Source: Blastocladiella emersonii ATCC 22665 (lineage: Eukaryota > Fungi > Blastocladiomycota). Taken from it: DNA of 64,000 nt. The DNA is taken from assembly GCA_025594325.1 (NCBI GenBank), contig JANHCV010000008.1, positions 744,001-808,000 of the forward strand, in the 5' to 3' direction. The translations under genes were made by a program, and so were the position numbers. The notes beneath the pieces were generated by a model, which saw nothing but the letters and a program-made list of their open reading frames with translations, was not told the origin of the DNA and did no database searches. Below are positions 1 through 26,561 of this stretch, piece after piece. Numbering within the stretch: position 1 is the stretch's first letter; each line of letters begins with the position of its first letter.

Positions 1-602
1 GATTCCGATCGCCGGCGCGAACGAGAGCTCGAACGAGGACGGTCCCGGGATCGCGTACGAGAAGCGCGTTCCGTTCGCGATTGAGAGCGCGATCGATCCG
101 AGCGCCGCAGATTATTCGCGGACTGAGAAGCTGATTGTGAGCGGTCGCGTGACGAAGGACGTGTAGAAGGCTGTGAGGGAAGCTTTTTGGCATCGCGCAA
201 GCTATCGGGTGCTTGGCCGTTCAAACTTGAGGTGGAACGGGACAGCTGGGCCTGTTCGCGGAGATGCACTTGCGCAAGACTAGGCACGCAGTTGCCGGCG
301 AGGTGACTGACTCCATCGTGGAAGGGAATCGGGCAGAGGTCGGGCGTCAAGTCAAGCTGCGACCGCAAACGCTCCAGGTTCGCAATTTCAGCAAGTGCCG
401 TTTGAAAATCGAGCTGGGTGCTCCAGGAGACCGCTTTCGAGGCCCGCGAGAGAAGTGCCGCGCGCATGACGGTTACACGCAGGTCCATGGTCCTGAGCAC
501 CACGGCTTCGAGAAGTGCATGGCGGTCTGCCGCACTGTCCGGAACCCGACTACCAGAGAGCTCATAACGCGCAAGAAGCTCGGTCGCGCCGGCCAAATCC
601 AT
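1..602 (-). CDS. Gag-like family Y, copy Y0 (5' part; runs off the left edge)
   Basis: My translation from ATG 602: MDLAGATELLARYELSGSRVPDSAADRHALLEAVVLRTMDLRVTVMRAALLS...AEIANLERLR then an RS-rich tract, open to position 1. Same N-terminal motif (RALLEAVL..LELRI.LM) as ORFs 10208-11740 and 11970-13862. Absent from the ORF track because its stop lies outside the window. Confidence 0.75.
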   Translation of the reverse strand, partial: MDLAGATELLARYELSGSRVPDSAADRHALLEAVVLRTMDLRVTVMRAALLSRASKAVSWSTQLDFQTALAEIANLERLRSQLDLTPDLCPIPFHDGVSHLAGNCVPSLAQVHLREQAQLSRSTSSLNGQAPDSLRDAKKLPSQPSTRPSSRDRSQSASQSANNLRRSDRSRSQSRTERASRTRSRDRPRSSSRSRRRSE

Positions 603-1069
603 GTTATTATCCAGTTTCATTACGTTGCATAGAGTTATTTGCCAAGCTGCGTCGCTGGGGGTGAGGGCTCTGCAGAACGAGCGGCTGCGCAAAACTTCTC
701 GGAGAGCAGCGGGAGTGTGGCGCCGAGTGTGGCGCTGCGGGCGCACGCGCAGCCACCTGATTGATTAACGCGTCTCGCGCGCGGAGACGCGCTGACGGGG
801 GCGGCGATCACGGAGTCCGAAACTAAGAGGAACGCACGAGAGAGTCGGGTGTGCTAGGAATATTGGCGATTGGTAGCGTTAGGAACTGCTCCCCTCCGTG
901 CTGGGCTCTCAACCCCACCCCTCCTCCACCCCTCCCCCACCCACCCCTCCCCAACCCAACCTCAACTCAACCTCAACTCATCCTCAACTCAGCCCTTCAG
1001 CGCGTCAATGAAAGATACATGCGCTGCGGCGTCGTAGTTAACGCGTTGTGCGGAAAGAAATACGCGCGA

Positions 1070-2913
1070 TTAGAGGATGAAGAGCTTCTTAGTGGGCGCC
1101 TTGTCGCCGAACATCTTATTTACGCTGATGCCCGCGGCGGAGAGCGCGTTCACAATAGCAGCCGCGTTCTCTTCAGGAGCCCGGAGTCGGGAGCAGTCGG
1201 CGGTCGAGTGCGTGCGCGCGATGGGCCAAAGGCCCGGAAGTGATAAGCAAAAGTTGCAACAAAGGTCGGACCCGCGACTGGAAGGAGGAGTCGGCCTTGC
1301 CGTTGAGGTGGAGGATCGGTCCGAAATCGGGACAACACTCGGCTTTTGAGCGACGAGTCGTTCCCTGGAATTGTGCAAAGAATCTGGCTGGGGACCAGAC
1401 AAGGGTGCGCGCAAAGCTTGAGCAGCCAATTCAAGTGGCAGAGAAGATGATGCATTAGCGGACGGAGATTGATCGTGTTCAAAGGCGATTCGCAAAGTAT
1501 TCCGCGAGGGAGAATCAAGAGAAGCGCGCTGACGGCCAGGCGCACGCTCGGGCGATGGCGAGGAAACCGATCCGCGCGATCCAAACGGGCAAGTGAGGTG
1601 GCCGTGCAACTTCACCATATCGCCCAAGCTGCAGCCTTGATCAAACACCATCTCCGTGAGAGGATTGACTGCAGCACCCAAGGCGTAAAAGTGCTCGTCC
1701 GATAGCACTTGCTTGAGCTGGCGATTCCGCCGGTTTCTTGCCACTTCGAGGTCAATCACCTCCCCCAACATCGCGAGGAACCGCGGATGAAAGTCGAGCA
1801 CCGACTCGCCCGGAGCAAGCTTGAGAGCGCGCCAGCGGGCCACCCGTTCGCGCCGCCAGTTTGGGTCCGTCGCGTTGCAAAAAGCGCGGCGGGCCTCCTC
1901 ATTGCTCGTTGTCTCCTCCAAGAATATCGCAAAAGGCCGAGTACAGGTCGGGGTGCACGTTGGATCGCGCCGTCAGGAGCACGGAAGTGAGCGTTTTTGG
2001 CGCGTGAGCGACCGCCTCAAGTTGCGCAAGAAATCGGCGCGCGAGATGCGCGGGTGGATTGGTGCCGCCGCGAAGCTTGGGCACGTGCGTCCGAAGCACT
2101 TGGAACAGCTCCGGGTCATACGCACGCGGCCCGCAACGAGGGCCCGGTGAGTCGGGCTAAGAGCGGCACAGCGACTGGTCACGAGTTCGCGAGACAGGCC
2201 GAAGAAGAGCGCGAGACGGAGAATGCGAGCGAACCAAGTGGCGTAATTGGGTTGGGGTGCGGGATTGAGAGCGTCGGCGTTCTTCATGCGGGAGTTGGGC
2301 CGGCGATCGCGTTCGTGACCGCGGCCGCGCGGAGGAGGGCGCCCGACGTGAAGGTGAGCTTGAGTGGGATCGAGTCGAAAAGCGCATGCTCAGTCGCTGC
2401 TCGAGAGCCAGAGTGCGAGCGGAGCTCGCGCTGCAATTTACCGGCGTCGTTAAGCGGACACTGTGACCAGGCAAGCGTGCTCAAAGGAGCAGATGAGTTC
2501 AACGGTAGAGCATGCTGCGCATTCGATTTGAACGAAACAAGTGCAGCTGTGGTTGCGGTACGGCATGGAGTCGGTGCAATCATGCTGGAGGCTAGCACCG
2601 TCTATATGGCAAATGTCGCGATTACAAACATTGACCTGAGCGGCAGTCAACGCCGCTTTGATTCGAGCCTGTAAGAGCTCCAGCTCCGTGATCTCAGCGG
2701 AACTCTTACTGGTTGAAAAATCCGAAACATCCGGAGCCGAGCCCACGAGAGGCCGAGCGTAAGTAGAAAGTGCCGAGCGCATCATTGATATCCGTAGCTC
2801 CAACAACCGGCGTAGCACGGCTTCGAGGAGCGCTCGCCTGCCCGCTTCGGTCTTAGGAAGCTGGTCGACCTCACATAACGAGCAAGAGGTTTGGCCGCAT
2901 TGGCGAGATCCAT
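1070..2913 (-). pseudogene. Gag-like family Y, copy Y1 (frameshifted)
   Basis: Pieces in different frames: MDLANAAKPLARY (2913), LRRLLELRISMMRSAL, VPKLRGG..ARRFLAQLEAV, DPNWRRERVARWRALKLAPGESVLDFHPRFLAML, knuckle CNFCLSLPGLWPIARTHSTADC. One shift is an extra T in a T4 run near 1930. Confidence 0.7.
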
Positions 2914-3940
2914 CAATTCATCCGATTCCATTGTAACAAGTGTCACACGAGGCGAGCCTGATATCGTGGCCCGAAGCGGAGGTGGGGAAGATCAAGCGGG
3001 CGGGTGGCGGTCGGGCGTTTCGACCTCCTCCCATCATGTGACCGAACGCGTCGACGCGTCTCGCTTCTCGCTCCTCAGGATGGATGGAAGCTCATGCGGG
3101 GTGGGGGTTCATGGGGCAGAGCGGGCCGGCGGCGGTTGGGTCCGGGTACTGGTTGTGCGTGAGCATAGTGACAATCCGCAGCGGGGATCTAAGTTCACGG
3201 ATGATCCAAGTACAGTGCATGGAGAGCCAAGAGCGTTTCTGGGTCGGGGGTAGCTGGAACCATGGGCAAGAAAGATCGATACGGTGGTAACCGCGAGCAC
3301 TGATTTGCTGGCCGCGATCAGGTGATTGTTGGACGCGTCTCGCACGCGTGTCTCGCACGCACGCATGCACCGGCGGCGCGGGCAAAAGAGCAGGCTTTTG
3401 ACCGGATATTCCAATTCAATTCACAAGAACACACGCAGGCACTTGAATCGGACACGAACACGGCACACGAGGGGCAGAAGGGTTATCGCTTGTCTGACAC
3501 ACTGTCGTGTTCTATCGTCGCTAACCCGTAGGTCATCAACCAGTGGGGGGTATCGAACACATGACATCGCACCCCGACACACTCAAGATTGACGGCACAC
3601 TCGGGCGCTCCGGTCACGCTACAGGCACGTAGCGTCGGTCAACCGCGGCCATAACGTATGCGAGCCCTCTCTCATTGCAGCCCAAGTGCAGCATTACTCA
3701 GATATATTGCGTATAGGTTTAAAGCTCGGCCGCTCTAGCTTCGTCCGTGTCCGGTGCGGCGCGCCATGAAGCAAATCGTTCGAGTTCGACACGCCAAGCT
3801 TGTTTTTTTTTTCCCGGGGCACCCCACCAGGGCGCGTCAGCTGCGAAATTTGGAAACTATTACAGGATCTCCAAGAGCGCGATGGCTCGAATCGTAGGTT
3901 TGCCATCGACGAGAACTCTGATCGGAGTATACGGATCGTT

Positions 3941-4641
3941 TCATGAGCTCCCACGTTCTGTTAAACGGTTGCCCCACTTCCTGTTGCCCCACGAGAACTC
4001 TGGGGCAGCCAGTGAAAGGGGACATCCAAGTGTAAGATCCAGTTTTTCCGCATCTCCAAGCACAAAAAGACGACCGCGTTGGAAGCTGCGCTCACAAGGG
4101 TCTCGGTACGAAGCTGGCGACACCAAACCAAGAGATTTCCTAGAGGGAGTCGGGGCGTTGAACGTGAGTCGCTTGATCGTTGGAAACGGTTCTGATTTAC
4201 CGTACAATGAGACCTTGTACACATCAGCCGCCTCTTCCTCGCGATCAGAGCACAGTCTCCGGCCCAGTCCACCAAAGAAAACGGGTTCGCCCTCGGCAGT
4301 CTTGAAGTCAGACTCGGCGGTGAATGAGAGCGTTGTACGCAAGCAATGTCGACGAAGGGTCAACATGGTCGTGAGAATTGGTTCCTGACCGTTGTCGCTC
4401 TGGGCCTCGCTTAGTCCAGTTTCATCGAAGGCTGGCAAGTTGTGAAGAAGAACTTCGGTTTCCGGGGGGAGTTCAGGATATCCAGGTTAAGACAAACGCT
4501 CGTCCTCGGGTGTTTCGACGCAAGAATCGCGGCCTTGAGCTCGGAGGCATCGAGAGTAGCAGCGCGGACTCCGAGTCGAAGGTGAGAGTTGGAAGTCGCG
4601 AGCGGGCTGGCAAGAACCCGAATCACCTCGTCTTCAGGCAT
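3941..4641 (-). pseudogene. F-box-motif ORF abutting Helitron copy 1 (one frameshift)
   Basis: KFSDMPEDEVIRVLASPL resembles the F-box start L.DLP.E+L..I. Frame shifts at the G6 run at 4464-4469 into ORF 3941-4438. Confidence 0.4.
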
Positions 4642-4683
4642 GTCGCTGAACTTGACCGCGCCAAGGATACTAGCGGGACTAAT

Positions 4684-5867
4684 TCTCAGCAGTAGGCTGA
4701 GTTTCTGTGGAGCTGAATTCGCGCTCAAGCTGGGCCATTTGGCACGCCTGACTTTTCTGCCACTCCCATCAACACGCGTCGCGACGCGTCTCGGTCGAGC
4801 TCGAATTATCTTCTCCTCAATTTTCTCCAAATCCTCTTAATAAATCTACCCTCTCACTCTATGAAACTCAACTAAAATCGTCTGGGGCACAGTTCGACGT
4901 CGGAATACTCTCCGTGTACCTGACCTCTCACTCTTCCCGCTCCTCCCGCGGCCACTGTGCATATCCTCTACATTTCCTCCGTCCTTCATGTCCTACGTGG
5001 GCATCCACACGCTTCCCTGACGCTTTGATTTAATTCACCGCTTGCGCGTATTGTGTCTCGCGTTTTTTGTCTCGCGTCTCCTGTCTCGCACTCGTGGCGT
5101 GCGCGAGACACATCGCGTCTCTTGTGTCTCACTAGCACGAGACGCGCACGCGCGTTGCCAGACACGCGCGTGAGAGCGCGTTCGTTGCGCGGACGGCAAA
5201 TTCCCACGCGTCTGGACGCGTGGGAGCGCGTGTGTGCGCGACGCGTGTGTGCGCGACGCGTTGGCACGCGCGTGACGGCGAATTCCCACACGTCGACACG
5301 CGTGCGAGCGCGTCTGGTGCGCGGACGGCAAAATCGCTTGCTTCTTTCTTCCGTGCTTTCTCACGCGGCATCGTCAACGGCGTCATTGGCCGTGTTGAAG
5401 GCTTTGCCACCGACGCGAACAACGACATTGATGCAGTCATCATCCGGCCCAACAAGGATCTGGGTCGCATGCCCAAGCTACCCGGGATCCCCGACGGCTG
5501 CTTCCCGCTGCGCCGCGAGATCGCCTCGTTCCGCCTCAAGAACAAGGTGGCCGGCACATCCAAGACGATCCATCGAGCCCAGTTCCCGCTCGAGCTCGCG
5601 TACGCGCTGACGGCGCACAAGGCCCAAGGGATGACCCTCGAAAAGGTCATCGTTGATCTCGCCGACATGACGCGTGGATCGTTACCGTGGCGCTTCCTGT
5701 ACATGATCCTATCGCGTGTACGGCGCGGTGACGACATCCTGATCCTGCGTGATCCAGGTATCCAAGGCCTGAATCAAACACAGGATCAACATTTACTTGC
5801 CGAGTACGCTCGACTGCAAAGTCTGGCGGAGGCAACCACTACCTAGTCCTTAGCTCATTAATACATG
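4684..5867 (+). mobile_element. Non-autonomous Helitron (Helitron2-like), copy 1, 3'-truncated
   Basis: Begins TCTCAGCAGTAGGCTGAG. Carries the PIF1-type helicase C-terminus (GIVNGVIG..R.QFPLELAYALTAHKAQGMTL..LYMILSRVR, stop 5846). Reverse complement of 25378-26561 and the same ORF translations as copies 2 and 3. Lacks the last ~123 bp. Confidence 0.88.
5043..5330. repeat. CGCG/ACGCGT-dense array inside the Helitron (also in copies 2 and 3)
   Basis: Roughly 24 CGCG tetramers in ~290 bp, including the hairpin TCCCACGCGTC-TG-GACGCGTGGGA and repeated GCGCGGACGGCAAA. Confidence 0.8.
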
Positions 5868-6434
5868 CACAATAAGCTCGCGCATCACCCACTCGCGCAC
5901 GTCCCGTTTGCGCGAAAGCGCGCTTCTACCCAGTTTCGGAAGCCGGTCCATGGCCAACATCACATCTCGGCCGCGCACAATGATGTTGAGATCGGCCTTC
6001 GACGTTGATGATCTGGGACACGGTTCAACATCAAGCTGGTTGATCCAGCCGCCCATCAGCATAAACTGTTTGTTCCTAGGCTTCTTGTATCCGACGGTGG
6101 GTGAGATCGGAACGCGCGCAGCAGTTAGCGCGTCAAAAATGGCACGTGGGTTTTCTGCCGCGGGCAGTCCGATGTGAAGTGCGTTTGCGCACTGGATCGC
6201 GGGTCGCGAAGGAATCCGCAGAAATGACAGGGAGTGCAAGGCGCGTGGACTGCTGCAAGTGAACCCGCGGTCGGTGGAGGTGGGTATGCGGACGCAATGG
6301 GGGCTGGTTTTGTGGAAGCTGTTGCACGCGCCGAGCCTCGAGGAAACTCGGAAGGCTGGCGAGCACTGCGGGGCGACGCACGTTTCGAAACGCGACCCGT
6401 GCAGGTGAACAACGCGCCGCGCCACGGCGCGCAC
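5868..6434 (-). pseudogene. Gag-like family Y, copy Y2 (C-terminal remnant)
   Basis: Knuckle CHFCGFLRDPRSSAQTHFTSDC and C-domain NPRAIFDALTAARVPI..IVRGRDVMLAMDR..VMRELIVH, frameshifted between them. Its last codons come from the Helitron. Confidence 0.65.
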
Positions 6435-6724
6435 TCATGTCCTCACTGTTCCGCGAAACGAAATAAAATGACGCGACAAGGGCAAGACGTGATGCATGGG
6501 GTTGCGAGGCCCGCGGACTCGCTCGAAGGGTCGGAAGAGAGGGGTAGATCGAGGAGTGCATGCAAAACGATCCCGTGGATGCAGCGGGAATGCGTCACGC
6601 CGCGGCGCAGCGCGCTTGCGACCCCGCGGCCCCGAGCAAGGGCGAGATAGCCGGTGAACTCAAAAAAAAGGATGGAGGTGTAGTCAAAAGGCAGAGAGGA
6701 CACAGTGGTCATGGCTGGTGATGC

Positions 6725-8933
6725 CTACGGGTACAAGATTTTGTGGAAGGCGGGCCACGACGCGGTACCGGTCGTCAGGTCCAAAGCCGCCGGCGGACCC
6801 GCAGCAAAGTCGTCAGCCGCGTTCTTCTCAGGGTGTGTGTAGCGGTGGATCCAGGTGCACACGGACTCGGCGAGCGTCGGCTGGACCGAGGCATCGACCC
6901 GTTGGACAATGAGCTTCCGCGACACCTTGGTGTGGTCCTCAGCCGCGGCGGCGACGACCATTTCGGCCATCCAGCTGTTGCGACGGAATGCCACGTCAAT
7001 GATCTCGACCATTCGATCGTGCGGTGCGAGTGACGGGTGCGTGACTAGATGCAAGGGCGGTGTACGGGTCAGTCAAGCAGGGGTCCGACGCGAGCGCGGA
7101 CGCGCGACGCGTACCCGACGAGAATGTGAGTGAGAGGGTCTTGCGCTTGCTGCGCCTGCTGCGCTTGCTGGCCTTGGCACCGACGGCGACTCCTGGAACT
7201 GCGACGTCGTCCGGTGCTGCAACGTTGTTGGGTACCGCGACGAGGTGCGCGCGGCTCGCAAAGGACGCGAGGTGGAAGGCGAGGGCGGCGGCGAGATGGG
7301 GATCGCTTAGCTGGCCAATAAGCTTGATCCCGGCCGTGATGGTCGCGTCGCGGTACTCGTCGTCAAACGCCGCCATGGCGAGGGCGGCGCGGCACTGGTC
7401 GGCGGCCTTGGCGACGTGCGGGAAGTGCGTGCTGCGAGGATCCGGCGCGACGACAACGCCGTCAAGGATGCGGGGGCCGTAGCGCTCGTAGAGGAACGCG
7501 AACGGACCGGCGGCGGCGCGGACCGGGTCAAAGTCGCGGTCGAGGATCTCACTGAGCTTGATCTTGGGGCGGTCCGCCGGGCGCCTGTCGGTCGCGGTAG
7601 GACGGACGCGACCTACGTATTTCGGGTCCAGGCGGAGGATCGAGACGAGGACCTCGAGCATGGTCGTGCCCGGCGGAACCCGGACGTCGGTGGCGCAGTG
7701 GGCGGCGAGCTTTGGCACGCTCGCGCGGAGCCAGCGGAGCCGCTCGCAGTCCATGTGGAGGAGATGGTCCATGAGGCCCGTGTGCGCGTTGAGCGACTCG
7801 GCGAGGCGGCCGACGGCAGCGTCGTCGGCGATGATCTGGTTGATGAGGCGGAAGGCCTCGCGCGTCACCTTGGCGACATTGGGAACAGCGTCAATCTGAG
7901 GCGGCGACGCTGGTACGGGACCGGGCGCAACCTGGCCCGGCGGTTGGTGCGCGGGCGGGAGCGGGGGGAGCGGGGGGAGCGGGGGGAGCGGGGGGAGCGG
8001 GGGGAGCGGGGGGAGGAAGGACGCGGCAGCGTGACGAGCAGACACGACCGCGGGCGGAAGCTGACTCGTCGGCGGTATCGGCAGGTCCTCAGGGCCGCGC
8101 GCAGTCTTGGCAGTGGCAGACACAGCCGACGGGGCGTCGGCGCCGCGGGCTTGCGGCGGCGCGATCAGCGGGGTCTCGCACACGGCCGGGGGCACAGACG
8201 GCGGCGTAGTCGGCGGGCAGGGGCCGGACGCGGTCAGGGTGACGACGCGGAACGTGTCGGTGACCTTGGCGCCCTCCGACGCAGTCGACAAGTCCTCGAC
8301 GACGATCGAGTATGGCGACGGGCCCGTTGATCCGGGTAGCGGGCCCGCGGCCACAACCACGGGGGCCGGGTCGGCGGCGGACCCACCCGCGTCCTCGGCG
8401 ATGAGCTGCGTCGCGACCAGTGCCGCGGGGGCCGGGTTGGTGGTGGAACCGCTCGCGGGCGCGAGGGTGGCGGTGGCGGCGGGCGTGACCGTGGCCCGGG
8501 CCTCGGGGACGTCGACGTCCATTGGGTCCTCCGGTCCGCGATCAGGCTGCTCGCGCTCCTCGAACTCGCGTGCAAGCCTGGCAGCGAAGTTACCACCCGC
8601 CCAGAAAAGCTTGCGCGGGGGCGGCAGGTTCGGACGGCGTCGCTTGGTCGGCGGGGGCGGGACCTTGTTGGCGCGAACTGGAAGGGTTCGACATGGTTAG
8701 GGAACCGCGACGAGAGGGTGTGGAAGCGGATGAGAGCGTACCGTCGTCTTCGTCGTCGTCGGAGGCTGGGCGGCGGGGCGGGCGCGGCGACTGGATCGGG
8801 TCGAGGACAGCGGAGTGGTTCAGCTGCGGCGGCGTCGTGGCCGTGGTCGAGTCGGGCAGGACGTCGTCGACGACCTTGCCAAACTCCGTGTCGCCGGCGG
8901 CCGTACCCGAATCCGCGTCGCCGGCGGCCGTGT
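6725..8933 (-). CDS. Hypothetical protein Z (Pro/Ala-rich N-part, helical C-part), spliced, one frameshift near 8605
   Basis: ORF 6996-8522 joins ORF 6725-7054 in frame through intron 7114..7045 (GTACGC...CTGAC...TAG). Upstream, removing one G from CTGGGCGGGTGGTAAC joins it to ORF 8590-9777. Strongly G/C-ending codons. Confidence 0.55.
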
Positions 8934-9754
8934 CCAGCTGGTGGGCGCAGGGAATCCCAGGTGGGTCAGGCGAACGTGAGCGCGAACGCGAAAGGGCATG
9001 GGTTGCGCGACGAGGCTGCGGCGACGAAGTGCGCTGCCGTTTCCGAGCGGACGAAGCATGAAGTTTGCGAGATCGAGAACGAGGTCGGGAACGCGAGCGC
9101 GAGCGGGAGCTAGAGCGCCGGCGCGGCCGAGTCGATGTACGAGATTGCGAGCGCGAGCGGGAGCTGGAACGCCGGCGCGACCTACGCGGCACGGGAGATC
9201 GAGATCGAGACCGCCGGCGTGACTCTTGTGAAGTGCGAGAAGGAGACTGAGATCCAGGGTGCAAACCAGAGACACGCGACGATTGGTGCGAGCGGGTCTT
9301 GGAGCGGGACCGGTTGCGCGACTGCGTGCGAGAGTGGTGCTCGCGAGAACGAGGCAGAGAATCGCGCCGCTGCGTCGTTGTCGACGGGTTTGACGACCTC
9401 GATTGGGAACGCAAATCGTGCGCAAGGCCCAGTGAGCAAGGCGTCGAGTCAAGCGAAACCGGTGTAGAGCGGGTTGAGCCCGCCAGAGAGTCAGCTTGGA
9501 GCTGAGCACGAAGTAGCTCGAGTCCCGCAAGCTCCCTGGAGTGCGCGGGCCGTTGGTCTCCCGCGCCCGATTGTTCGGAAGTCGCGCCGGGAGACGATGC
9601 ACAAGTAGACAGCGCCGATCGTATCAATACAACTCTAAGCTCCATCTCGAAGCAGCACAGATTCAAGGAGCGCTCGTCGGTCGGCCTCGCTGTCCGGAAG
9701 CGCAGTTGAGGGGTCATAACGTGCAAGGAGTTTGGCCGCCTCCGCGGTGTACAT
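8934..9754 (-). pseudogene. Gag-like family Y, copy Y3 (N-terminus plus RS tract only, fused to gene Z)
   Basis: MYTAEAAKLLARYDPSTALPDSEADRRALLESVL, a frameshift, ELRVVLIRSALS, long RS tract, DPPGIPCAHQL. Similarity to Y4 ends at CAGCTGG near 8934. Confidence 0.65.
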
Positions 9755-9935
9755 GGGTCTATCTGAGTGCATTGCATAGAGTGGCGTCGGGAGAATACAT
9801 TGAAGACGAATGATAGCCGAGAGAAGAAGGGGAGTGGCGAGAAGGGCCAGCAAGCTCGCCCGGTCCCGTGAGCTGAAACTCGTCTCGCGCTTCAAGCCAC
9901 GACCACGAGGAGAGGCACACCAACGATGTATCCAA

Positions 9936-11593
9936 TCATATAGCCCTGCCGGCCTCATCAAGACCCTGCCGAATGAACAAGAACAGCTCGCGCATCGCCC
10001 ACTCGCTGCCGTCCTTGCGCTGGACACCCTCCATCGCCGCGATCACTTCGAACGCACGCACAACCGCGTCCGCGGCGGCAGGCCCAACGACGCGCCCGTC
10101 CCGGTGCGCGCCGCGCAGCCCAAAGGTCCAGCTGCGGAGCACCACGTACAGCTCGCCCGTCGTGCACTTGGTGCCCACGTCTTTCCGGACAGGGATGGCT
10201 GCAGCCGTCAAGGCATCGACGATGATCTGCGCGTTGGATTCGGGGCGCTGCAACTTGCGACAGTGGGGCGTGGCGTGGGTGTGCGCGCCGGAGCGAAGGG
10301 AGGAGATCCGTGCACAAAACCTGCACACCGAAGTGGGGTCACGAGGAGGATCGGACGACTCGTGCTTGAAGCGGGCGCGTCGAAAGCACTCTGCCCCGCC
10401 TGAACCGCCGGTTCATAAGAGCGAGGGAGCGCGTATGCGTTTCGCCGCGACGTTGATGATCCAGGCGATTCCAGGCAAACAATATGTCCTTGCCGCTCCA
10501 CAACCTCGTCAAGCCCGCACTCGCGGACAAAGACAAGCTCCGTGATCGGGTCCGCGACGTGGCCCATGGCGTAGTACATTTTGCCGGCAAAGACTTGTTT
10601 CAGCTGGCGGTGGCGCTTGACCTTGGCAGTGACTGTAATCACCTCGCCTAGGATCGCGAGGAACTGCGGATAAAAGTCGCGCACCGACTGGCCCGGGTAA
10701 ATCGTAAGTGCGGTCCACCGCGTCGCCCATTCGCGCCGCCAGTTGAGGTTGGTCGCATTGAAAAAAATTCGACGCGCTTCCTTGTCGCTCGTCGTCTCCT
10801 CGAGGAACACGGCGTAAACGGCGTGAAGATCAGGCGAGACCATGGGGCGCGCCGTAAATAGTGCGGATGCGAGCGTGTTCGGTGTGTTGACCACCAACTC
10901 GAGCGCGGTAAGAAATTTGCGCACGTCGGCCTGCCGGTAGCCGAACAGCTTTGGAGCATTCGTCCGAATCGTTTTGGCCAGCTGCGGATCGTAGGCACAA
11001 ATTATGCCGGGTGGGTCAGGTGGTGGTGAGCGAGGACGCGGCGAGTGCGAGCGTTGCCGGCTGCGGGACCGCGTGCGGTCGCTGGCCAGTGGTTGTCGAG
11101 GCGGTGAGCGGGAGCGGGATCGATGTTGGAAGACGCTCGCTGAGTGCGCCCGGTTCTCGTGAAAACGCTCGTAAAGAGGCCGCTCGTGAGGGGGTGCGGT
11201 GGGCAGATGGCCGAGAGAACTTGGAACTCGGCGAGATGGCGGCGACGCAAAGTCCTGCGGCTGCGCGGAGAAAACGACTCCACTACTCGAGAGCAGGCCG
11301 CCGTTGCCGGAAAGGAGGTTTGGATGGGACCTCGATAAGTGCGTCTCGAGCCGAGCTCGAAGTCGCTCAAGGTCTGCGATTCGGGCCGATAGGTCGCGGC
11401 AGACAAGCTCTGACCGTGACAGGTCCGATGTAACACGCGAAAGAAGAGTTGCGTGCATCAAGGCTATCCGAAGCTCCAAAGTATTGCGCAGAACGGCTTC
11501 AAGAAGCGCGCGTTGTTCGGCTCGGCCGAATGGGAGGCTCGTCCAGGGGTCATAATTCGCAAGCAGCCTGTCGGCCGCGCGGACCGAATCCAT
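9936..11593 (-). pseudogene. Gag-like family Y, copy Y4 (full length, one frameshift before the knuckle)
   Basis: MDSVRAADRLLANYDP..., NAPKLFGYRQADVRKFLTALELV, NWRREWATRWTALTIYPGQSVRDFYPQFLAIL, then a shift near 10350-10450 to CRFCARISSLRSGAHTHATPHC and the C-domain (ORF 9936-10328). Confidence 0.7.
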
Positions 11594-11969
11594 GGTGCTA
11601 TCTGGGTTCACTGCATGGAGTCGTGTCTGCGGAATACATTGCATTGGGTCCGTAGTGTCGCTTGAAGGGAGCAGACGTGAGGATGATCGGCACGAGCGGT
11701 GAAACGCGGCTCGCGCTGCAAGCCACCGAGTCCGAGTCACGCCGCCACGCGAAGATGTCTCGCGCGTGCCGACGCAGTGGTGCCGACGCGTCCCGAGCGA
11801 GCATGACGAATAAAGAGCTCATGCGTCGCTCGCTCGATTCTGCACATCAATCAACCAGGTGAGCTACTCGACTCTTTGGCGAAGTTCCGGCCATCTCAGC
11901 CCGCAGGCAAGTAAGGGGAACCCACAACAAACTGTATCCGGTGCGATTCCAACCGACAACGAGCCCGAA

Positions 11970-13766
11970 TCACGCAGCAAGCCGTTTCCGGATATACACG
12001 AACAGCTCGCGGAACGCCCCTTCGCTTCCATCCTTGCGCGTGACCCGCTCCATGGCCGCAATCACTGTACGGCCGCGCACGATGGTGGCGATCTCCGTCG
12101 TGGTTCGCCCGCGTTGATTCTTGCGCAGCCCAACCGCCCACCCGCACAGAATCCGGTACCACATGCCGGTGGTGAAGCCTAAGCCGATACCGGGGTCGAC
12201 TTGGATCCCGGCAACGTCCAGTGCAGCGACGATCGCATCCGCATTGGTTCTCGGCGACTGCAGTTCGGGGCAGTTCCTGGCCGTATGGGTGTGGGATCCC
12301 GAGGAAAGGTCTGGCACGGCGGCGCAGAAGGCGCACTGGACGCTACCTGATGTGTCAAGCGGCGGGCGAGCTGCAATTCCTGGATGTGGCGAATGTGCTG
12401 CGGAACGAGAGGACGGCAAATCCGAGATTTCACCGGGTCCGTGCAACGAGCAGGAAGGGGAAGCGATACTTGTGTTCGAGAGCTGGTTGTTGCTCGATGC
12501 CGACGCGAAGTCGTGATCCAAGCACTTGGACTTACTCGACAGCGAGCTGACCATGTGCCCGAACACGAAAACCATATCCTCGAGTCCAAACTCGGGCCGA
12601 CGGACCATGCGCGCAAGAGAATTCGCTGCGCCGTCGACCACCTGGCCCAATTTGTCGGCTAGGATCTGCTTGAGTCCGCGCTGACGCGATCGGGACGGAC
12701 TGAGCTCGGCCACTTCCTCAAGGAGCGCGACAAACCGCGCGAAAAAGTCGCGCACCGTTTCACCTGGCCGGATCTTCAACGCGAGCCAGCGATTGACCCA
12801 GTCGCGCCGCCACCGCGGGTCCGCCGCGTTGAGGAACACGTGGCGAGCCTCCTCGTCGGACATGGTGTCGAGCAAGTAGACTCCGTAGATGGCGAAAAAG
12901 TCGGCCGAGACGCGCGGCCGCGCGTCAAGGAGTGCTCGGGCCAGTGCACCAGGCACAGCTGCGACCGATCGGGTCTCCTGCAGTAGAAGGCGCGCGGCAG
13001 TTGGGTTCGGGCCACGCAGCAGGTCAAGATCGAAAAAGCTATTACGGATAGCTGTACTAGGCGAGCGCGCGGGGGAGCGTGACCGTGGTCGCAAACAAGG
13101 TGAAGAATTAGGTCGGGACAAGCGAGAGCGAGAGCGTGGTCGATCGCGCGAATCGCGGGAGCGGGACTCGCGCGATCGACTGGGTGAACGCGATCGAGCA
13201 TGTGGATAGGCCCGGTCGGCGGGTGAGCTCGTCTGCGAGGGCGAGCGGGATCTGGTGTGAACTCGCGTACGAGATCGTGCACGCCGGTCGTACGTTTGGA
13301 AAGTAGAGCAGGTTTGAGAGCTCGAGGGTAAACGTCGAGGATATTCGGGAGACAAGGTATCCGATACCGGGGCCACCGGCCGCTCCGTTGTGCCAGTAGA
13401 AGCGGACCATGATCGAGCAAGTGGGTGCACCACAGAACCAGGTTTGTGCGCAAGCTCAGGTACACTTGCAGCGCTGCTGTAAGCGATAGAGGACAGGTCG
13501 TGGCTCTGCTTCTCAAGGCGATCCTGGAGCCGCTCTAGTGCCCTGATCTCGGCAACGGCGTCCGTAATACAGTGACCCGAGGCGGACTCGAGTTGGCTGC
13601 GGAGAACCGAGTTGACCAAGGAGAGCCGAAGCTCTACCAGTTGGCAAGTGACGCCGTTGAGAGCGGCACGATGGTCCAGCCACCGGCCCGACGGCGGCGG
13701 ATCATAACTTGCAAGCGTCTCGGCCGCGCCAGACGACTCCATGACATGTTCCATTTTGTATTGCAT
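11970..13766 (-). CDS. Gag-capsid-like protein with RS tract, extended CCHC knuckle and novel C-terminal domain (Y5, intact)
   Basis: Uninterrupted ~600-codon ORF. DPRWRRDWVNRWLALKIRPGETVRDFFARFVALL resembles the retrotransposon Gag CA motif L.Q..gESV.eF..RF..L. Knuckle CAFCAAVPDLSSGSHTHTARNC. No pol or LTR found nearby. Confidence 0.75.
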   Translation of the reverse strand: MQYKMEHVMESSGAAETLASYDPPPSGRWLDHRAALNGVTCQLVELRLSLVNSVLRSQLESASGHCITDAVAEIRALERLQDRLEKQSHDLSSIAYSSAASVPELAHKPGSVVHPLARSWSASTGTTERPVAPVSDTLSPEYPRRLPSSSQTCSTFQTYDRRARSRTRVHTRSRSPSQTSSPADRAYPHARSRSPSRSRESRSRDSRDRPRSRSRLSRPNSSPCLRPRSRSPARSPSTAIRNSFFDLDLLRGPNPTAARLLLQETRSVAAVPGALARALLDARPRVSADFFAIYGVYLLDTMSDEEARHVFLNAADPRWRRDWVNRWLALKIRPGETVRDFFARFVALLEEVAELSPSRSRQRGLKQILADKLGQVVDGAANSLARMVRRPEFGLEDMVFVFGHMVSSLSSKSKCLDHDFASASSNNQLSNTSIASPSCSLHGPGEISDLPSSRSAAHSPHPGIAARPPLDTSGSVQCAFCAAVPDLSSGSHTHTARNCPELQSPRTNADAIVAALDVAGIQVDPGIGLGFTTGMWYRILCGWAVGLRKNQRGRTTTEIATIVRGRTVIAAMERVTRKDGSEGAFRELFVYIRKRLAA

Positions 13767-13829
13767 CAAGTCGCACTGCTGAGAAACGGCTGATCCGAGC
13801 CACGGAGGGAGGTTGAGAGCGGAGGACCG

Positions 13830-13960
13830 GCGTGGCGAAAGCGAGTGGCGCGCGCGGCCCACGTGATGGAAACGCGTCTCGCACCTGCCGACGCGTCGCG
13901 CCGCCGCGCCGAGCCGGGCCGCGCCGGATGCTTGTTACCCGTCCGCCCGCCCGCCGGCGC
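13830..13960. promoter_or_regulatory. ACGCG/CGCG cluster in the divergent intergenic region between Y5 and the 14542 gene
   Basis: GAAACGCGTCTCGC...GACGCGTCGCGCCG. Similar clusters lie upstream of other genes here (near 3050-3360, 39420-39470, 40760-40810, 53880-53930, 57700-57745). Confidence 0.45.
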
Positions 13961-22493: not shown

Positions 22494-24932
22494 ATGGCGA
22501 CTCGTGGCAGCGGCGGGCGTACCGCAAAGGCCGCATCGAGTTTGGCATCTACGCCAGCATCTTCATCGGGCACCAAGCGGCCCGCTGGTTCAACGGCCAG
22601 CGGCAAGGCCAAGAAGGCGCGCACTGGTGCCGCGCCGAGTTCCTCGCGTTCCAGCAGTTTGGGCGGGGTCGGCGGCAAGGGCGACTCGGCCGAGGTCGTT
22701 CAAGGACATGTTCTTCACGGTCGGCAAGAAGGGCTCCCCCCCGGAGCTCGACCTCAAGGAGATCTCCAACCTGCGCACGCTGCTCCTGTTCACCCAGCTC
22801 GCCATGGACAAGAAGATGGACTTTGAGGACGTGCTCAAGACCTACACGGAGGCGTACAACAAGCTCGAGTACGGCAAGGCCGTGTGCAAGCTCTGCTTCG
22901 TCATGTGCCCTGAGCGCTCGTTGTTCTCCAAGTCCAAACCGGGCGGGTGGGGCAACCTTGGGAAGCACATGCTCAACCACCACCCCATGTTCGTCAAGCA
23001 GAGCCCGTGGTGCGCCAAGTACTACAATAAGCACAAGGGCAGCGCGTCGTCGGTCCCCCCGACGCAGTCCTTGGTCAACACCATGTTCAACAGCGCCCGC
23101 GGCAGACCCGTGTCCGCCGCGACGCAGGCCGCGTTCGAGGAGGCGCTTGTCAAGTTTGTGAGCTCCAAGGACCAGTCGATTTCGGTCGTCGAGTCCAAGT
23201 CGTTCCGCAAGCTCATTGGGACCGTCTGTCCCGATATCAAGATCCTGCACCGCACGGCCACGTCCAACTGCATCCTCCGCGCGGCGATCCGCGTCAGCGA
23301 CCGCACGCGCGCCCTTCTCGCGCTGCGCATCTCGCTCATCACGCTCATGATTGACGGCTGGACGTCCTCCAACTCGCTCGCATTCATTGGTACGTTTTTT
23401 TCTCCTTCTTGCGCGTCTGGGTCCAGCTTCTGCACGGCGCGAAAGTGCAACGCCGGCGTTGCACTTTTGCTCGGCGCGAAAGTCAGACGCTGGCGTCGCA
23501 CTTTTGCTCGGCGCGAAAGTCAGACGCTGGCGTCGCACTTTTGCTCGGCGCGAAAGTCAGACGCTGGCGTCGCACTTTTGCTCGGCGCGAAAGTCAGACG
23601 CTGGCGTCGCACTTTTGCTCGGCGCGAAAGTCAGACGCTCGCGTCACACTTTCGTGCCAGCCCTGTCCCGTTCCTCGGATCAAGATGACTGACACCGCGC
23701 CGTGCGTTCTCACCTTAGGTATACGTGCTTCATTCATTATTCTTGTGGACGGGAAGTGGGAGCGTCACGAAAGTGTGCTTGATCTTGTGCCAACGGATGA
23801 GAAGACTGGTGAGGGAATTGCGCAGACCATCCTCAACGTGCTTGGCGACTACAACCTCGGCCTCGACCAGATCTTTTTGATTGCTGCTGACAATGCTTCG
23901 GCCAACAAGGCCGCGCTCCGGGTTCTTCAGGATGAGCACGGCGGCGACCATCTCGTTCTTGTCTTTTGTGTTCAGCACAGCGTTAACCGTAGTGTGCAGC
24001 GCGACATCAGCATCTTTCACCACGTGTGCCCCAAGTTCAAACCCATGGTTCATGAAGGCCCAGGGGACCAAGACTAGGAACAGCTCCGTATAAGACTCGG
24101 TGTATACTTCCGCCGTTTGGCTTCCCCGAGCAAATGAGGAGAGCGAGGGCAAATTGGAACAACAGCGAGGGGTGGGGCGGCGGTGCCGCTGCACGCACTG
24201 AGCGTGTTGATTGAGGTCACTTGGCGTCACCTGATCTGGTCGCAACAGTTCATGCCCTTTACCACAAAACTCACCTTTGCACCAAGCTCTCGGAGGCGTG
24301 CGAGACGCTCCTGGGCGCCAAAATGACGGTCCGCAAGGACGTGAGAACGCGCTGGTGGAGCACGCTCAAGGCCATTGCGTGCGTGGTTGACGCAAAGAAG
24401 GGAATTATTTCCGTTGCCAAGAACAGCAAACTGCCCGAGCTCCAGCTTGACGCCAAGGATTGGTCAATTCTCGAGGCCTTCAAGAGTTACTTTTGAGGAA
24501 ATCTTCACGGCCACCACCCCACTCAATGATAGCATCAAGACCTGGACGCTTCCCCTTGGTGCTTACACGTTTGAAAAGATTTTCCATTGCGCAGAAAAGC
24601 AAATCAAGGCGTACCTCCATCCTGACGATTTCGTGCGCTTCACGGACATGAACAACATTGCCAATGACAAGGTAGCCTGCAAGCAGTCGCCTCTTGACTT
24701 CTGGCGCGAAAGGCGGGAGTCGTTCCCAGAGCTTTCCCGCGTTACGCTTGACCTGCTCGCTGTCCCAGCTACGACAACTAGTGTTGAACGTCTATTCTCT
24801 GTCTGCCGAACTGTTCTGCGGCACAACCGTAGCCGTCTTGGTGCCAAGATGTTCCGCTCCATTGTCCTGAACAAAATGGAGCTCCTTGACCGCGAGGCAG
24901 CAGAAGCCGCTGCCAAGTGCAAGCGCAAGTAG
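22494..24932 (+). mobile_element. hAT-superfamily transposase, defective
   Basis: BED finger CKLC...HMLNHH, DGWTS, DNASAN, CVQH, TRWWST and dimerisation region FWRE...FPELSRVTLDLLAVPATTTSVERLFS. In-frame intron 23390..23718. Frameshifts near 22690 and 24491, stop at 24075. TIRs not identified. Confidence 0.9.
23425..23655 (+). repeat. 37-bp minisatellite (~6 units) inside the hAT intron
   Basis: CACTTTTGCTCGGCGCGAAAGTCAGACGCTGGCGTCG starts at 23462, 23499, 23536, 23573 and 23610, with degenerate units on both sides. Confidence 0.95.
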
Positions 24933-25254
24933 TTGTGAACGTTAGGTGTTTGAATCCTTCCCCCTGTTAAAATATAGTCATAGTCCTTCTTAGTCCATTG
25001 ATCCACCCTTGTCCCTATTTGCCTCAGAGAAGTCACTCGTTTTTGCACGTTGGCGGTCCTTTCTGTGAGACATCATCATTGTTAAATCTGTTGCGCAATT
25101 TCTGCATGTTGATGTGTGTGCATTTAAAGTAAGGATTATAGTTGCAACGTTTTCTGACTGCTGTTGTCTTCCACAAGCTTTGTGGGCGAATTAGCGCCTT
25201 AAATGCAAGAAGAGAAATTGGTATCGCTAACCTGATCCTCAGATATCGCTGACA

Positions 25255-26561
25255 CTAGGGGTGTGTGCTTTGCACACTCTGTCTCAGCAGTAGGCGACTA
25301 GGCTGACTTGAAAATATGCTGGACGTCAAGTTCCGTCCGCGTTGAAAGGCGAGTAGTGAATGACGTGTCGAAATCGCCATGTATTAATGAGCTAAGGACT
25401 AGGTAGTGGTTGCCTCCGCCAGACTTTGCAGTCGAGCGTACTCGGCAAGTAAATGTTGATCCTGTGTTTGATTCAGGCCTTGGATACCTGGATCACGCAG
25501 GATCAGGATGTCGTCACCGCGCCGTACACGCGATAGGATCATGTACAGGAAGCGCCACGGTAACGATCCACGCGTCATGTCGGCGAGATCAACGATGACC
25601 TTTTCGAGGGTCATCCCTTGGGCCTTGTGCGCCGTCAGCGCGTACGCGAGCTCGAGCGGGAACTGGGCTCGATGGATCGTCTTGGATGTGCCGGCCACCT
25701 TGTTCTTGAGGCGGAACGAGGCGATCTCGCGGCGCAGCGGGAAGCAGCCGTCGGGGATCCCGGGTAGCTTGGGCATGCGACCCAGATCCTTGTTGGGCCG
25801 GATGATGACTGCATCAATGTCGTTGTTCGCGTCGGTGGCAAAGCCTTCAACACGGCCAATGACGCCGTTGACGATGCCGCGTGAGAAAGCACGGAAGAAA
25901 GAAGCAAGCGATTTTGCCGTCCGCGCACCAGACGCGCTCGCACGCGTGTCGACGTGTGGGAATTCGCCGTCACGCGCGTGCCAACGCGTCGCGCACACAC
26001 GCGTCGCGCACACACGCGCTCCCACGCGTCCAGACGCGTGGGAATTTGCCGTCCGCGCAACGAACGCGCTCTCACGCGCGTGTCTGGCAACGCGCGTGCG
26101 CGTCTCGTGCTAGTGAGACACAAGAGACGCGATGTGTCTCGCGCACGCCACGAGTGCGAGACAGGAGACGCGAGACAAAAAACGCGAGACACAATACGCG
26201 CAAGCGGTGAATTAAATCAAAGCGTCAGGGAAGCGTGTGGATGCCCACGTAGGACATGAAGGACGGAGGAAATGTAGAGGATATGCACAGTGGCCGCGGG
26301 AGGAGCGGGAAGAGTGAGAGGTCAGGTACACGGAGAGTATTCCGACGTCGAACTGTGCCCCAGACGATTTTAGTTGAGTTTCATAGAGTGAGAGGGTAGA
26401 TTTATTAAGAGGATTTGGAGAAAATTGAGGAGAAGATAATTCGAGCTCGACCGAGACGCGTCGCGACGCGTGTTGATGGGAGTGGCAGAAAAGTCAGGCG
26501 TGCCAAATGGCCCAGCTTGAGCGCGAATTCAGCTCCACAGAAACTCAGCCTACTGCTGAGA
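25255..26561 (-). mobile_element. Non-autonomous Helitron (Helitron2-like), copy 2, full length 1307 bp
   Basis: 5' TCTCAGCAGTAGGC; 3' GCCTACTGCTGAGA-CAGA-GTGTGC AAA GCACAC-ACCC-CTAG. No target-site duplication; T on both flanks; helicase C-terminal fragment 26025-25399. Confidence 0.92.

Follow-up and report, generated by a model that had tools for sequence, protein, structure and literature searches.

Genes that retain a Gag without pol are known from animals, from plants and from three single-copy cases in Dikarya (PMC8321522). The animal genes Arc/dArc, PNMA and RTL/PEG10 are pol-less and LTR-less, derive from the Gag of Ty3/gypsy-order elements and have kept the capsid region. The co-opted fungal genes, Crtg12-14, are of Ty1/copia or Bel-Pao origin, single copy and shared between families (PMC8321522); Blastocladiomycota are not mentioned in the main text of that survey. 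The vertebrate SCAN family is a capsid-derived domain present in dozens of copies, many of them clustered (the family is mentioned in PMC8321522). It retains only the C-terminal domain of the capsid, fused to C2H2/KRAB transcription factors. Gag derivatives can also act against retroelements. Ty1 p22/p18 and mouse Fv1 are restriction factors that consist of fragments or derivatives of Gag and interfere in trans with the assembly of particles or with incoming capsids; p22 is the precedent for Gag-derived restriction (PMC4599808, PMC8458377). Fv1 is a single gene whose product has a coiled coil at the N-terminus and a capsid-like domain.

The stretch of DNA analysed here, below called the window, comprises 64,000 nucleotides of Blastocladiella emersonii ATCC 22665, contig JANHCV010000008.1, positions 744001-808000. 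It contains six head-to-tail copies of one gene family, Y0-Y5, on the minus strand within 1-13862 and a seventh, divergent copy, Y6, on the plus strand at 62673. These are the copies and places given by the original prediction, and the motifs it quoted are all present in the alignments. With Y5 or Y4 as phmmer query against the six-frame translation, the other copies are found at E-values of 1e-5 to 1e-40, i.e., the likeness among them is far above chance. Only Y5 is intact, one of the seven. The features are, in window coordinates:

3..623, minus strand: Y0, N-terminal helices and RS tract; the rest lies beyond the left window edge and is seen in locus L006 at 4430-5633
768-773: ACGCGT of Y0
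1073..2934, minus strand: Y1, every domain, spread over three reading frames, broken; CCHC at 1193-1258
3046-3059: ACGCGT of Y1
5853..6425, minus strand: Y2, C-terminal domain only; adjoins a 1.2-kb repeat
6996..8522, minus strand: non-family ORF, 508 aa, proline-rich with a PPL repeat; occupies the place expected for the missing halves of Y3 (3') and Y2 (5')
8590..9777, minus strand: Y3, N helix and a very long RS tract (51 RS/SR dipeptides), then unrelated sequence
9960..11740, minus strand: Y4, every domain, the C-terminal third in another frame (change between 10349 and 10475); CCHC at 10260-10325
11786-11791: ACGCGT of Y4
11970..13766, minus strand: Y5, intact ORF of 598 aa, ATG at 13766, stop included in the coordinates; full-length match to the family HMM, conserved start region
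11973..12269, minus strand: C-terminal helical domain of Y5, ~100 aa, four predicted helices (alignments, AF2 pLDDT 80-94)
12270..12335, minus strand: zinc finger of Y5, C-x2-C-x12-H-x4-C; aligns with the CAYC-x14-H-x4-C finger of the Gag of a resident element
12531..13043, minus strand: mid domain of Y5, 171 aa, all-alpha, capsid-like; homologous to residues 150-326 of the same Gag
13062..13301, minus strand: RS-dipeptide tract of Y5; densest 80 aa with 24 RS/SR dipeptides and 56% R+S
13872..13896, no strand: two ACGCGT (MCB-like) motifs, ~110-135 nt upstream of the Y5 start
24053..24247, minus strand: solo LTR of a Ty3/gypsy-order element, TG...CA, with a 5-bp target duplication TGAAC; 94% identity to L003 16350-16545
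62673..63998, plus strand: Y6, ~25% identical, with a different repeat where the other copies have the RS tract; continues past the right window edge; A5 HMM E-value 1e-43

The left 14 kb of the window is one end of an array that runs past the left edge. The sampled locus L006, which overlaps the window at 100% identity, contains at least five more units, and the two together bring the array to 12 or more units of ~2 kb, arranged head to tail. One of the units in this 12-unit array is intact, two have all domains but are frameshifted, and the remainder are truncated; broken copies were searched piecewise and not joined across stops or frame changes. An intron as the cause of the frame change in Y4 was rejected, as no plausible splice pair is present. 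Similar arrays are dispersed across ~1.1 Mb of the contig. We found 51 mid domains in the 215 kb that were sampled, and the family has at least 51 copies. The genes are apparently intronless and encode ~600 aa each. Funannotate gene models exist for 21 members, the majority of copies are unannotated, and the genome paper (PMC9730499) does not mention the family.

A relative outside the arrays is the Gag of an LTR-pol element ~90 kb away, whose solo LTR lies in the window. At ~893.8-899.2 kb of the same contig (L003:17341-22680, minus strand) a single ORF of 1780 aa encodes Gag-Pol, with the domains RVP, RVT_1, RT_RNaseH, Integrase_H2C2 and rve in this order, and the element has 196-bp TG...CA LTRs and a polypurine tract. 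Its ORF is intact and its LTR copies are 94-97.5% identical, and it has probably been active recently in this genome. The family profile A5 aligns to the first 690 aa of this ORF with an hhalign probability of 91.5% (E 8.8e-7, 146 columns across the whole mid domain), and profile A3 to the same region with 82.5% (E 9.7e-6). The HMMER score of the family profile is 42.9 bits, from a match that comprises the mid domain and, collinear with it, the finger (residues 150-326 and 460-520 of the ORF), while the best of 2000 shuffles reaches 9.1 bits and the reversed sequence 0.3 bits. This shows that the family is homologous to a bona fide Gag. As the match is to the Gag region of an intact Gag-Pol ORF, the homology is now direct and goes beyond a resemblance of motifs. 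The identity is only 11-20% however, and the element is a long-branch outgroup to the family.

The family lacks the protease, RT, RNase H, integrase and LTRs that this element has. Domains of protease, RT or integrase are absent from the long ORFs of the window, and six-frame translations of the window and loci L001-L006 contain RT, PR or IN motifs only in the L003 element. The units in the window are not flanked by LTR pairs or by any other direct repeats. The absence of protease, RT, integrase and an LTR pair near the copies had been claimed in the original prediction and held in the window searches. The spacers have no similarity to the LTR of the related element, and their origin from decayed copies of this LTR was rejected for that reason. 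Further, no two family members share more than 69% amino acid identity, and the array units are 25-69% identical. Without LTR pairs, pol domains or near-identical copies, the family members are not units of an LTR retrotransposon.

The copies group by locus, with 9 label changes compared to 19.2 in shuffles, a value reached in none of 200. New copies would arise by local duplication of DNA rather than by retrotransposition, then diverge under purifying selection, and many would decay, i.e., birth and death. Selection was measured on copies whose mid domain is still open. Among these, pairs within a locus have dN/dS of 0.25-0.45 at dS 0.5-1.2, the 25 closest pairs (within-locus pairs included) have 0.20-0.45, and pN is lower than pS in 96% of 465 pairs. 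Since copies are most closely related to their neighbours in the array, the constraint acts after duplication, in place. The criterion of purifying selection used for co-option in PMC8321522 is met here by gag-only genes, for open mid domains only. The values are not near 1 and the array copies are not embedded in LTR-pol elements. The view that this early-diverging fungus has a tandem family of Gag-like genes, without pol and LTRs and subject to birth and death, therefore holds, given the Gag homology, the clustering by locus, dN/dS below 0.5 and the many broken copies.

Codon use is uneven. The GC3 of the mid domains has a median of 0.76 and reaches 0.95, against a GC12 of ~0.55, and some copies are at host level, 0.85-0.95. 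The whole of Y5 has 0.66, compared with 0.97 for the neighbouring midasin gene, which might indicate low expression or weak codon selection. RIP or methylation decay was rejected as the cause of low GC3, with CpG observed/expected of 1.2-1.4 and normal RIP indices. Of 18 copies, 13 have an ACGCGT upstream of the gene, between about -80 and -195 and for the most part between -110 and -160, where 24% would be expected (p = 2.4e-5). An M-K-L-D start is conserved among copies, and both the motif and the start context are maintained between spacers that are otherwise saturated. The motif, the start context and the 21 gene models may be taken as indirect support for expression at most.

From the N-terminus, the proteins have helices, an RS tract and an all-alpha capsid-like domain of ~160 aa (171 aa in Y5), followed by a low-complexity linker, a CCHC finger with a long spacer and a helical tail. 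The Gag of the L003 element has the parent-type layout of N-terminal helices, all-alpha capsid-like domain of 150 aa, low-complexity linker and long-spacer finger, and is collinear with the family including the C-x2-C-x12-14-H-x4-C finger (x14 in the element) and the helix that follows. Its linker is Q/P-rich and lacks an RS tract, whereas Y0, Y3, Y4 and Y5 have 12-30 RS/SR dipeptides in their densest 80 aa. The proposed new domain architecture is hence only partly upheld, most of it being inherited from a parent-type Gag, and the RS tract is the family's sole addition. The tract is shared with SR proteins, but the family has no RRM or other Pfam RNA-binding domain.

The finger had been described as a C-x2-C-x11-H-x4-C knuckle, and a CCHC knuckle as one of the hallmarks of Ty3/gypsy-type Gag. 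The spacing is instead C-x2-C-x12-H-x4-C in 18 of the 28 copies examined and x11-x16 in the remainder, a pattern 28-fold enriched over background. The retroviral knuckle, C-x2-C-x4-H-x4-C, is absent from every family fragment, and the family finger is not this knuckle. Classical-type C2HC fingers, as in FOG or MYST, have the spacing C-x2-C-x12-H-x3-5-C and a beta-beta-alpha fold. This spacing fits the same 18 copies, but the AF2 model of the Y5 finger shows two short helices only (pLDDT 80-85), and Pfam reports no zinc finger in Y5.

A referee may object that no profile recognises these proteins as Gag. The Pfam searches covered all copies as well as sets of 26 and 42 aligned members, and none of the window copies, Y5 included, has a match. 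The best match anywhere is that of a three-repeat member, P0001, to PNMA (PF14893) with 22.4 bits (E 9e-5, cut-off 25), followed by Retrotrans_gag (PF03732) with 14.8 bits (E 0.033, cut-off 24.1). Both matches involve the PGE-V--F--RF motif, the one to Retrotrans_gag (residues 100-131) falling on it and the one to PNMA (71-162) extending across it, but a His_Phos_1 noise match is about as strong. No copy reaches the threshold of a Pfam Gag family, and the evidence for Gag in the original prediction was in this respect weaker than claimed. However, the Gag of the L003 element has zero Pfam matches itself, so the silence of Pfam on the family is uninformative.

Structurally, the AF2 model of the mid domain is confident (pLDDT 91, pTM 0.85) and has ~10 helices. 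Foldseek against PDB (twice) and BFVD returned sub-threshold lists in which every E-value is above 1 and Ortervirales capsids predominate. The best matches are retroviral CA, with HIV-1 CA-CTD at TM 0.52-0.60 and a probability of ~0.5; ~21 of the top 50 in BFVD are Ortervirales Gag or coat proteins, and Ty3, Arc and PEG10 are not in the top 50. This enrichment, which rests on a predicted model, is merely suggestive. Word-index homology searches with the whole of Y5, residues 285-630 and the N-terminus found nothing, and a PDB sequence search with profiles A4 and A5 returned only noise from the RS tract. Among 1.84 billion (1.84e9) proteins all 21 matches are from B. emersonii; the 20 that were checked are all on contig JANHCV010000008.1, and no relative was found in another species, including other Blastocladiomycota. 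The synteny criterion for co-option (PMC8321522) is unmet, because there is no orthologue in any other species.

The array structure, the absence of pol and LTRs, the constraint in place and the conserved start region with its ACGCGT motif are shown. Domestication is inferred, and a host function is inferred at most. On balance, we favour the view that this is a pol-less, LTR-less, Gag-derived tandem family, locally duplicated and under constraint, whose products may be trans-acting Gag mimics. Each unit would keep the Gag order of the resident Ty3/gypsy-order element and add the RS tract. The N-terminal helices and the capsid-like domain might mediate oligomerisation of the products, and RNA might be bound by the RS tract together with the finger; the predicted capsid formation and RNA binding are inferred from sequence alone. 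For the role itself, our best guess, less likely than not and made only by analogy to Ty1 p22 and Fv1, is that the mimics bind or poison the particles of related retrotransposons. Ty1 p22 is encoded within Ty1 and identical to its Gag, whereas the family is separate and divergent. Fv1 resembles the family in joining a coiled coil to a capsid-like domain, but it is a single gene, and restriction by the family is an analogy only. Several points speak against our explanation: only one of seven window copies is intact in a mostly truncated local array, direct co-assembly is doubtful at 11-20% identity to the single available element Gag, the Pfam models of Gag all stay below threshold, the dN/dS values come from copies with an open mid domain only, the GC3 of Y5 is low and orthologues are lacking elsewhere.

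It is unlikely that the copies are relics without host function, i.e., a decayed gag-only non-autonomous retroelement or pol-less element multiplied by unequal crossing-over and drifting. Most copies are broken or truncated, the neighbourhood is full of mobile DNA (an identical three-copy repeat, the solo LTR, a Plavaka transposase gene), the window copies have a much lower GC3 than midasin, and the family is confined to one species. However, nearest relatives in the same array keep dN/dS of 0.25-0.45 at dS 0.5-1.2, and 51 mid domains are still open despite that divergence. Relics would also not be expected to keep a promoter motif and start context amid saturated spacers or, in some copies, host-level GC3, and neither an LTR nor a likeness of the spacers to the LTR of the element is present.

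The main alternative role to Gag mimics is Arc-type cellular packaging of RNA. Here the products would be cellular capsid or RNP builders of the Arc/PNMA/PEG10 type, forming shells or granules with host RNA, e.g., stored mRNPs of zoospores. The retention of the whole Gag layout for assembly and nucleic-acid binding, the gain of an RS tract, a typical RNA- and phospho-regulated module, and the conserved ACGCGT motif, which suggests programmed expression, speak for it. Nevertheless, we consider it improbable. Cellular co-options of Gag are usually one or a few conserved genes, and the fungal ones are all single copy (PMC8321522), whereas the dozens of copies here diverge fast and die often, which is the pattern of conflict genes, and no orthologues exist in other Blastocladiomycota. 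Compared with Arc, PNMA and PEG10, the family also has another finger spacing, the RS tract and an extra C-terminal domain, and capsid assembly is only inferred.

Amplification by rolling-circle (Helitron-type) capture, instead of unequal crossing-over of a resident gene, is very unlikely. A repeat of 1.2-1.3 kb, in three copies of 100% identity and with a UvrD_C_2/Pif1-type helicase C-terminus, adjoins Y2, and other arrays have helicase genes of the PIF1-like and Herpes_ori_bp kinds nearby. However, the repeat copies are identical while the array units are 25-69% identical, so repeat and array are of very different age; moreover, the repeat interrupts the array rather than bounding units, and the units share no terminal sequence. 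Finally, an orphan helical zinc-finger family with a chance resemblance to Gag, for which the absence of a Pfam Gag family at threshold, the His_Phos_1 noise level and the Foldseek E-values above 1 could be cited, is all but excluded by the two-segment collinear match of 42.9 bits against 9.1 for the best of 2000 shuffles, the hhalign probability of 91.5%, and an element Gag that likewise lacks Pfam matches.

Returning to the Gag-derived family we favour, it can be speculated that its dozens of proteins are capsid mimics, encoded in the germline as a diversifying library and expressed from a promoter of cell-cycle type (ACGCGT), which recognise and poison the particles of LTR retrotransposons, or that its intact members build RNA-carrying shells in zoospores. 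If the former were true, it would be an Fv1- or p22-like defence grown into a multigene system in an early-diverging fungus. Like Crtg12-14, the family is a gag without pol in a fungus, but it is of Ty3/gypsy order, belongs to Blastocladiomycota and has at least 51 copies in one species. It likewise differs from Arc, PNMA and PEG10, which are few conserved orthologues, in having dozens of tandem copies, and from SCAN in keeping almost the whole Gag. It would be by far the largest such family in a fungus, of a size without precedent there. The Gag type, with its long-spacer CCHC finger, is unrecognised by current Pfam models and PDB sequences, and a living relative of it is still part of a Ty3/gypsy-order element in the same genome. 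As a parent-type element occurs beside the derivative family in a model organism that can be cultured, restriction of related elements versus service to the cell is directly testable.

Some minor observations concern the window itself. An Rfam search and exact database look-ups of its ORFs gave no matches. The ORF at 6996-8522 has no Pfam match and no paralogue in loci L001-L006; that it is a divergent family member was rejected (hhalign probability 0.1%), and its GC3 is 0.83. Mobile DNA is abundant around the array, i.e., the three-copy, 100%-identical repeat with its Pif1-type helicase end, the solo LTR and the Plavaka transposase gene.

The minus strand of positions 1-13862 codes for a single protein family, in eukaryotic DNA with a G+C content of 54-72% in 2-kb windows across the stretch. 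The assignment is supported alike by the ORF listing, by tblastn, by phmmer and by an iterated HMM run on the six-frame translation. The copies in the window are as follows.

Family copies in the window
Y0, 3-623, minus strand: continues past the left edge
Y1, 1073-2934, minus strand: three frames share the coding sequence
Y2, 5853-6425, minus strand: C-domain alone
Y3, 8590-9777, minus strand: N-terminal helix and a very long RS tract, unrelated sequence beyond
Y4, 9960-11740, minus strand: one frame change near 10349-10475
Y5, 11970-13766, minus strand: intact, 598 aa
Y6, from 62673, plus strand: 25%-identical paralogue, continues past the right edge

There is no plausible intron to account for the frame change in Y4. 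The family motifs listed in the original prediction are all present and the RS-dipeptide tract is real; however, the finger had been given as C-x2-C-x11-H-x4-C, while the actual spacing is C-x2-C-x12-H-x4-C. The x12 spacing is found in 18 of the 28 copies in the genome sample, the others having x11-x16, and the finger pattern is 28-fold enriched over background. No direct repeats flanking the units were found, and the similarity of the DNA between units is limited to coding parts. Pfam gives no match for any window copy, and a word-index homology search gave none with the whole protein, the C-terminal 346 residues or the N-terminus.

Structure prediction and sub-threshold Pfam matches give only indirect support for a relationship to Gag, which they suggest as a possibility. 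The AF2 models cover the mid and C-terminal domains, leaving out the N-terminal coiled coil. The 171-aa mid domain is modelled as about ten helices (pLDDT 91, pTM 0.85), and in a 364-aa model the finger and C-domain (pLDDT 80-94) are preceded by a disordered S-rich linker. In Foldseek searches against PDB and BFVD every E-value is at least 1, still the lists are dominated by Ortervirales capsids: about 21 of the top 50 BFVD matches are lenti-, delta-, beta- and epsilon-retrovirus Gag plus two caulimovirid coat proteins, and the HIV-1 CA C-terminal domain is matched below threshold (TM 0.52-0.60, prob ~0.5). P0001, an annotated family protein with three mid-domain repeats, has sub-threshold Pfam matches to PNMA (E 9e-5) and Retrotrans_gag (E 0.033). 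The latter lies on the PGE-V--F--RF motif and the former spans it, and a His_Phos_1 noise match is about equally strong.

The direct evidence comes from a retrotransposon on the same contig. A motif scan of the loci fetched around family genes flagged an open frame of 1780 aa on the minus strand of one of them (L003:17341-22680), with the following Pfam domains.

Pfam domains in the 1780-aa open frame (residues)
692-797: RVP
931-1084: RVT_1
1153-1279: RNase H
1440-1493: Integrase_H2C2
1526-1605: rve

This is a Gag-Pol with the Ty3/gypsy domain order. The element is intact, covers L003:16350-22699 (contig JANHCV010000008.1, ~892.9-899.2 kb) and has 196-bp LTRs of the form TG...CA. The 3' LTR lies at 16350-16545, preceded by the polypurine tract GGAGGGGGG, and the 5' LTR, starting from 22660, is 97.5% identical to it across the 40 nt visible. 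The element is inserted directly behind the final unit of an array and was never called as a gene. A solo LTR of this element is found in the window at 24053-24247 (94% identical, with the 5-bp target duplication TGAAC on both sides), close to a tandem repeat with a period of ~37 bp (23417-23652), and a further LTR fragment is located at L007 3465-3596.

The N-terminal 690 aa of the open frame were assigned as Gag by position. Aligned with hhalign, the family profile A5 matches this Gag at 91.5% (E 8.8e-7) over 146 columns, i.e., the whole mid domain (Gag 155-303), and the profile A3 at 82.5% (E 9.7e-6). HMMER scores the family against it at 42.9 bits in two collinear stretches, one covering the mid domain (Gag 150-326) and one the finger and the next helix (Gag 460-520), while the best of 2000 local shuffles scores 9.1 bits and the reversed sequence 0.3. 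By eye, and unscored, the N-terminus of the element Gag consists of leucine-rich helices; its finger reads CAYC-x14-H-x4-C. The family members are Gag homologues. The element Gag itself goes unmatched in Pfam, also with the E-value limit raised to 10, and has no sequence relative in the PDB; the failure of the family to match Pfam Gag models is therefore no argument against Gag descent. The Gag of both element and family is of a type outside current models. In the tree, the element Gag comes out as a long-branch outgroup with 11-20% identity to each of the copies. This fits a single old origin and a later expansion in place, as far as can be judged from one element and a midpoint root.

Are the copies then resident genes or parts of a mobile element? 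The long ORFs of the window contain no pol domains; in the fetched loci, the only ones are those of the element. The array units have no LTRs, and their spacers show no similarity to the element LTR. No two family copies are more than 69% identical, and the tree clusters them by locus, with 9 label changes where shuffles give 19.2 and none of 200 gets down to 9. The seven L001 copies together make up one clade (support 100/98). From the absence of pol and LTRs, the low identity and the clustering by locus, we infer local duplication at the DNA level.

After duplication, the copies have been constrained as proteins. Within-locus sister pairs have a dN/dS of 0.25-0.45 at dS 0.5-1.2, and pN is lower than pS in 96% of 465 pairs (both Nei-Gojobori). 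This holds with the caveats that sampling was confined to copies whose mid domain is open and that dS is distorted by GC3 bias. Mid-domain GC3 has a median of 0.76 (range 0.60-0.95) and exceeds GC12 (~0.55) in all; the best copies are at host level, and the whole of Y5 is at 0.66. Members such as P0010 and P0003 resemble the host in codon usage. The midasin (MDN1) gene of the window (30289-38721, minus strand; AAA_5 and Midasin lid domains, 2810 codons open and intron-free there) reaches 0.97, i.e., the host codon bias is extreme beside that of the array genes. The copies show no signature of RIP or of CpG depletion. Array units have decayed heavily: of the 12 in the local array, a single unit is intact, two retain all domains but with a frameshift, and several are reduced to the N-terminal, RS and mid parts or to the C-terminal part. 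Broken copies entered the searches as separate pieces, never joined across a stop. The frameshifts are probably real rather than assembly errors, because the 34.3-Mb genome (21 contigs) was assembled from PacBio HiFi plus Illumina reads (PMC9730499). The family is unmentioned in that paper.

A profile search of 1.84 billion representative proteins gave only 21 matches. All 20 that were looked up are a 'hypothetical protein' of Blastocladiella emersonii ATCC 22665, encoded on the single 1.8-Mb contig JANHCV010000008.1 (locus tags H9P43_006651 to 006885). The seven loci fetched around member genes span 186 kb to 1.30 Mb of this contig. One of them, L006, is 100% identical to the window where the two overlap, placing the latter at 744001-808000, and shows the array running on leftward for five or more further units, which makes a minimum of 12 in ~31 kb. 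With a 42-sequence profile, 51 family mid-domains are found in the 215 kb sampled, nearly all head-to-tail inside a locus and the majority unannotated. As this sample is centred on known members, linear extrapolation of copy number is invalid; more than 100 copies in all is plausible. The gene models of P0001 (L001 10001-13458) and of a second annotated family protein, P0004 (L005 10001-15141), join two or three adjacent mid domains via long introns, and are likely array units merged by the gene predictor rather than genuine multi-domain genes. Chitin synthase genes adjoin two separate arrays (L004 11157-17526; L006 20744 onward), a Herpes_ori_bp-type helicase gene lies within L004, and a Plavaka-type transposase gene at the end of L007.

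The start region of the copies is conserved (GCA ATG AAA ... ATG GA, giving M-K-L-D-x-x-M-D). ACGCGT occurs in the 300 nt preceding the start in 13 of 18 copies against 24% expected (p = 2.4e-5), at about -80 to -195 and mostly at -110 to -160, frequently as GAGACGCGT. The spacer outside this motif cannot be aligned. It is a conserved promoter motif of the copies. In yeasts the same sequence is known as the MluI cell-cycle box; by analogy, and from sequence alone, it may have a cell-cycle role here.

Co-option of Gag is itself already known. Three events are reported in fungi, all single copy, all in Dikarya, and derived from copia or Bel-Pao (PMC8321522). The B. emersonii family differs from these in phylum, source lineage and scale, in its tandem arrangement, in the addition of the RS tract and in its non-canonical finger. 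The original prediction had inferred a domesticated capsid-forming family. The synteny/orthologue criterion for co-option is failed, because no relative is annotated in another species.

We suggest that the N-terminal helices and the capsid-like domain would mediate self-association, while the RS tract, added in the family, and the CCHC finger would bind RNA, probably under phospho-regulation. The products could be trans-acting capsid mimics that bind or poison particles of related retrotransposons. We favour this role because the pattern of conflict genes is seen here, with dozens of copies that diverge quickly and die at a high rate, because a related element in the same genome seems recently active, and because precedents exist. 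The recent activity is inferred from the intact ORF, the 94-97.5% identical LTR copies and the solo LTR with its TGAAC duplication. The precedents are Ty1 p22 (PMC4599808, PMC8458377) and Fv1. Without expression data behind it, even this favoured role is less likely than not. Two rivals are less likely still, neither ahead of the other: an Arc-like role in a cellular RNP, or mere relics without any host function.

The window also contains a segment of 1.2-1.3 kb present three times at 100% identity (4682-5867, inverted; 25253-26562; 53954-55264). The segment codes for the C-terminus of a UvrD_C_2/Pif1-type helicase (weak Pfam match) and looks like the end of a very young mobile element, Helitron-like or other. 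One copy adjoins Y2, breaking into the array. Where the halves of Y3 and Y2 are missing there is a 508-aa ORF (6996-8522, minus strand; GC3 0.83) with a (PPL)n repeat (9-bp tandem repeat, 7951-8015), which lacks a Pfam match, is unrelated to the family and has no paralogue among L001-L006. The ORFs at 26415-27437 and 43680-44564, both plus strand and without Pfam match, are 51% identical over 197 aa; the initial 49 codons of the former lie within the three-copy repeat, and a 70%-identical piece is found near a PIF1-like gene in L001. A satellite of about nine ~143-bp units (87-94% identity) occupies 41201-42528. In the right half, the only other ORF recognisable by Pfam has leucine-rich repeats (52609-53355, plus strand; LRR_6, E 1.8e-7), and ARAGORN predicts a 92-nt tRNA-Gly(GCC) at 56293-56384, of a length compatible with an intron, inside the long ORF 55208-56572.
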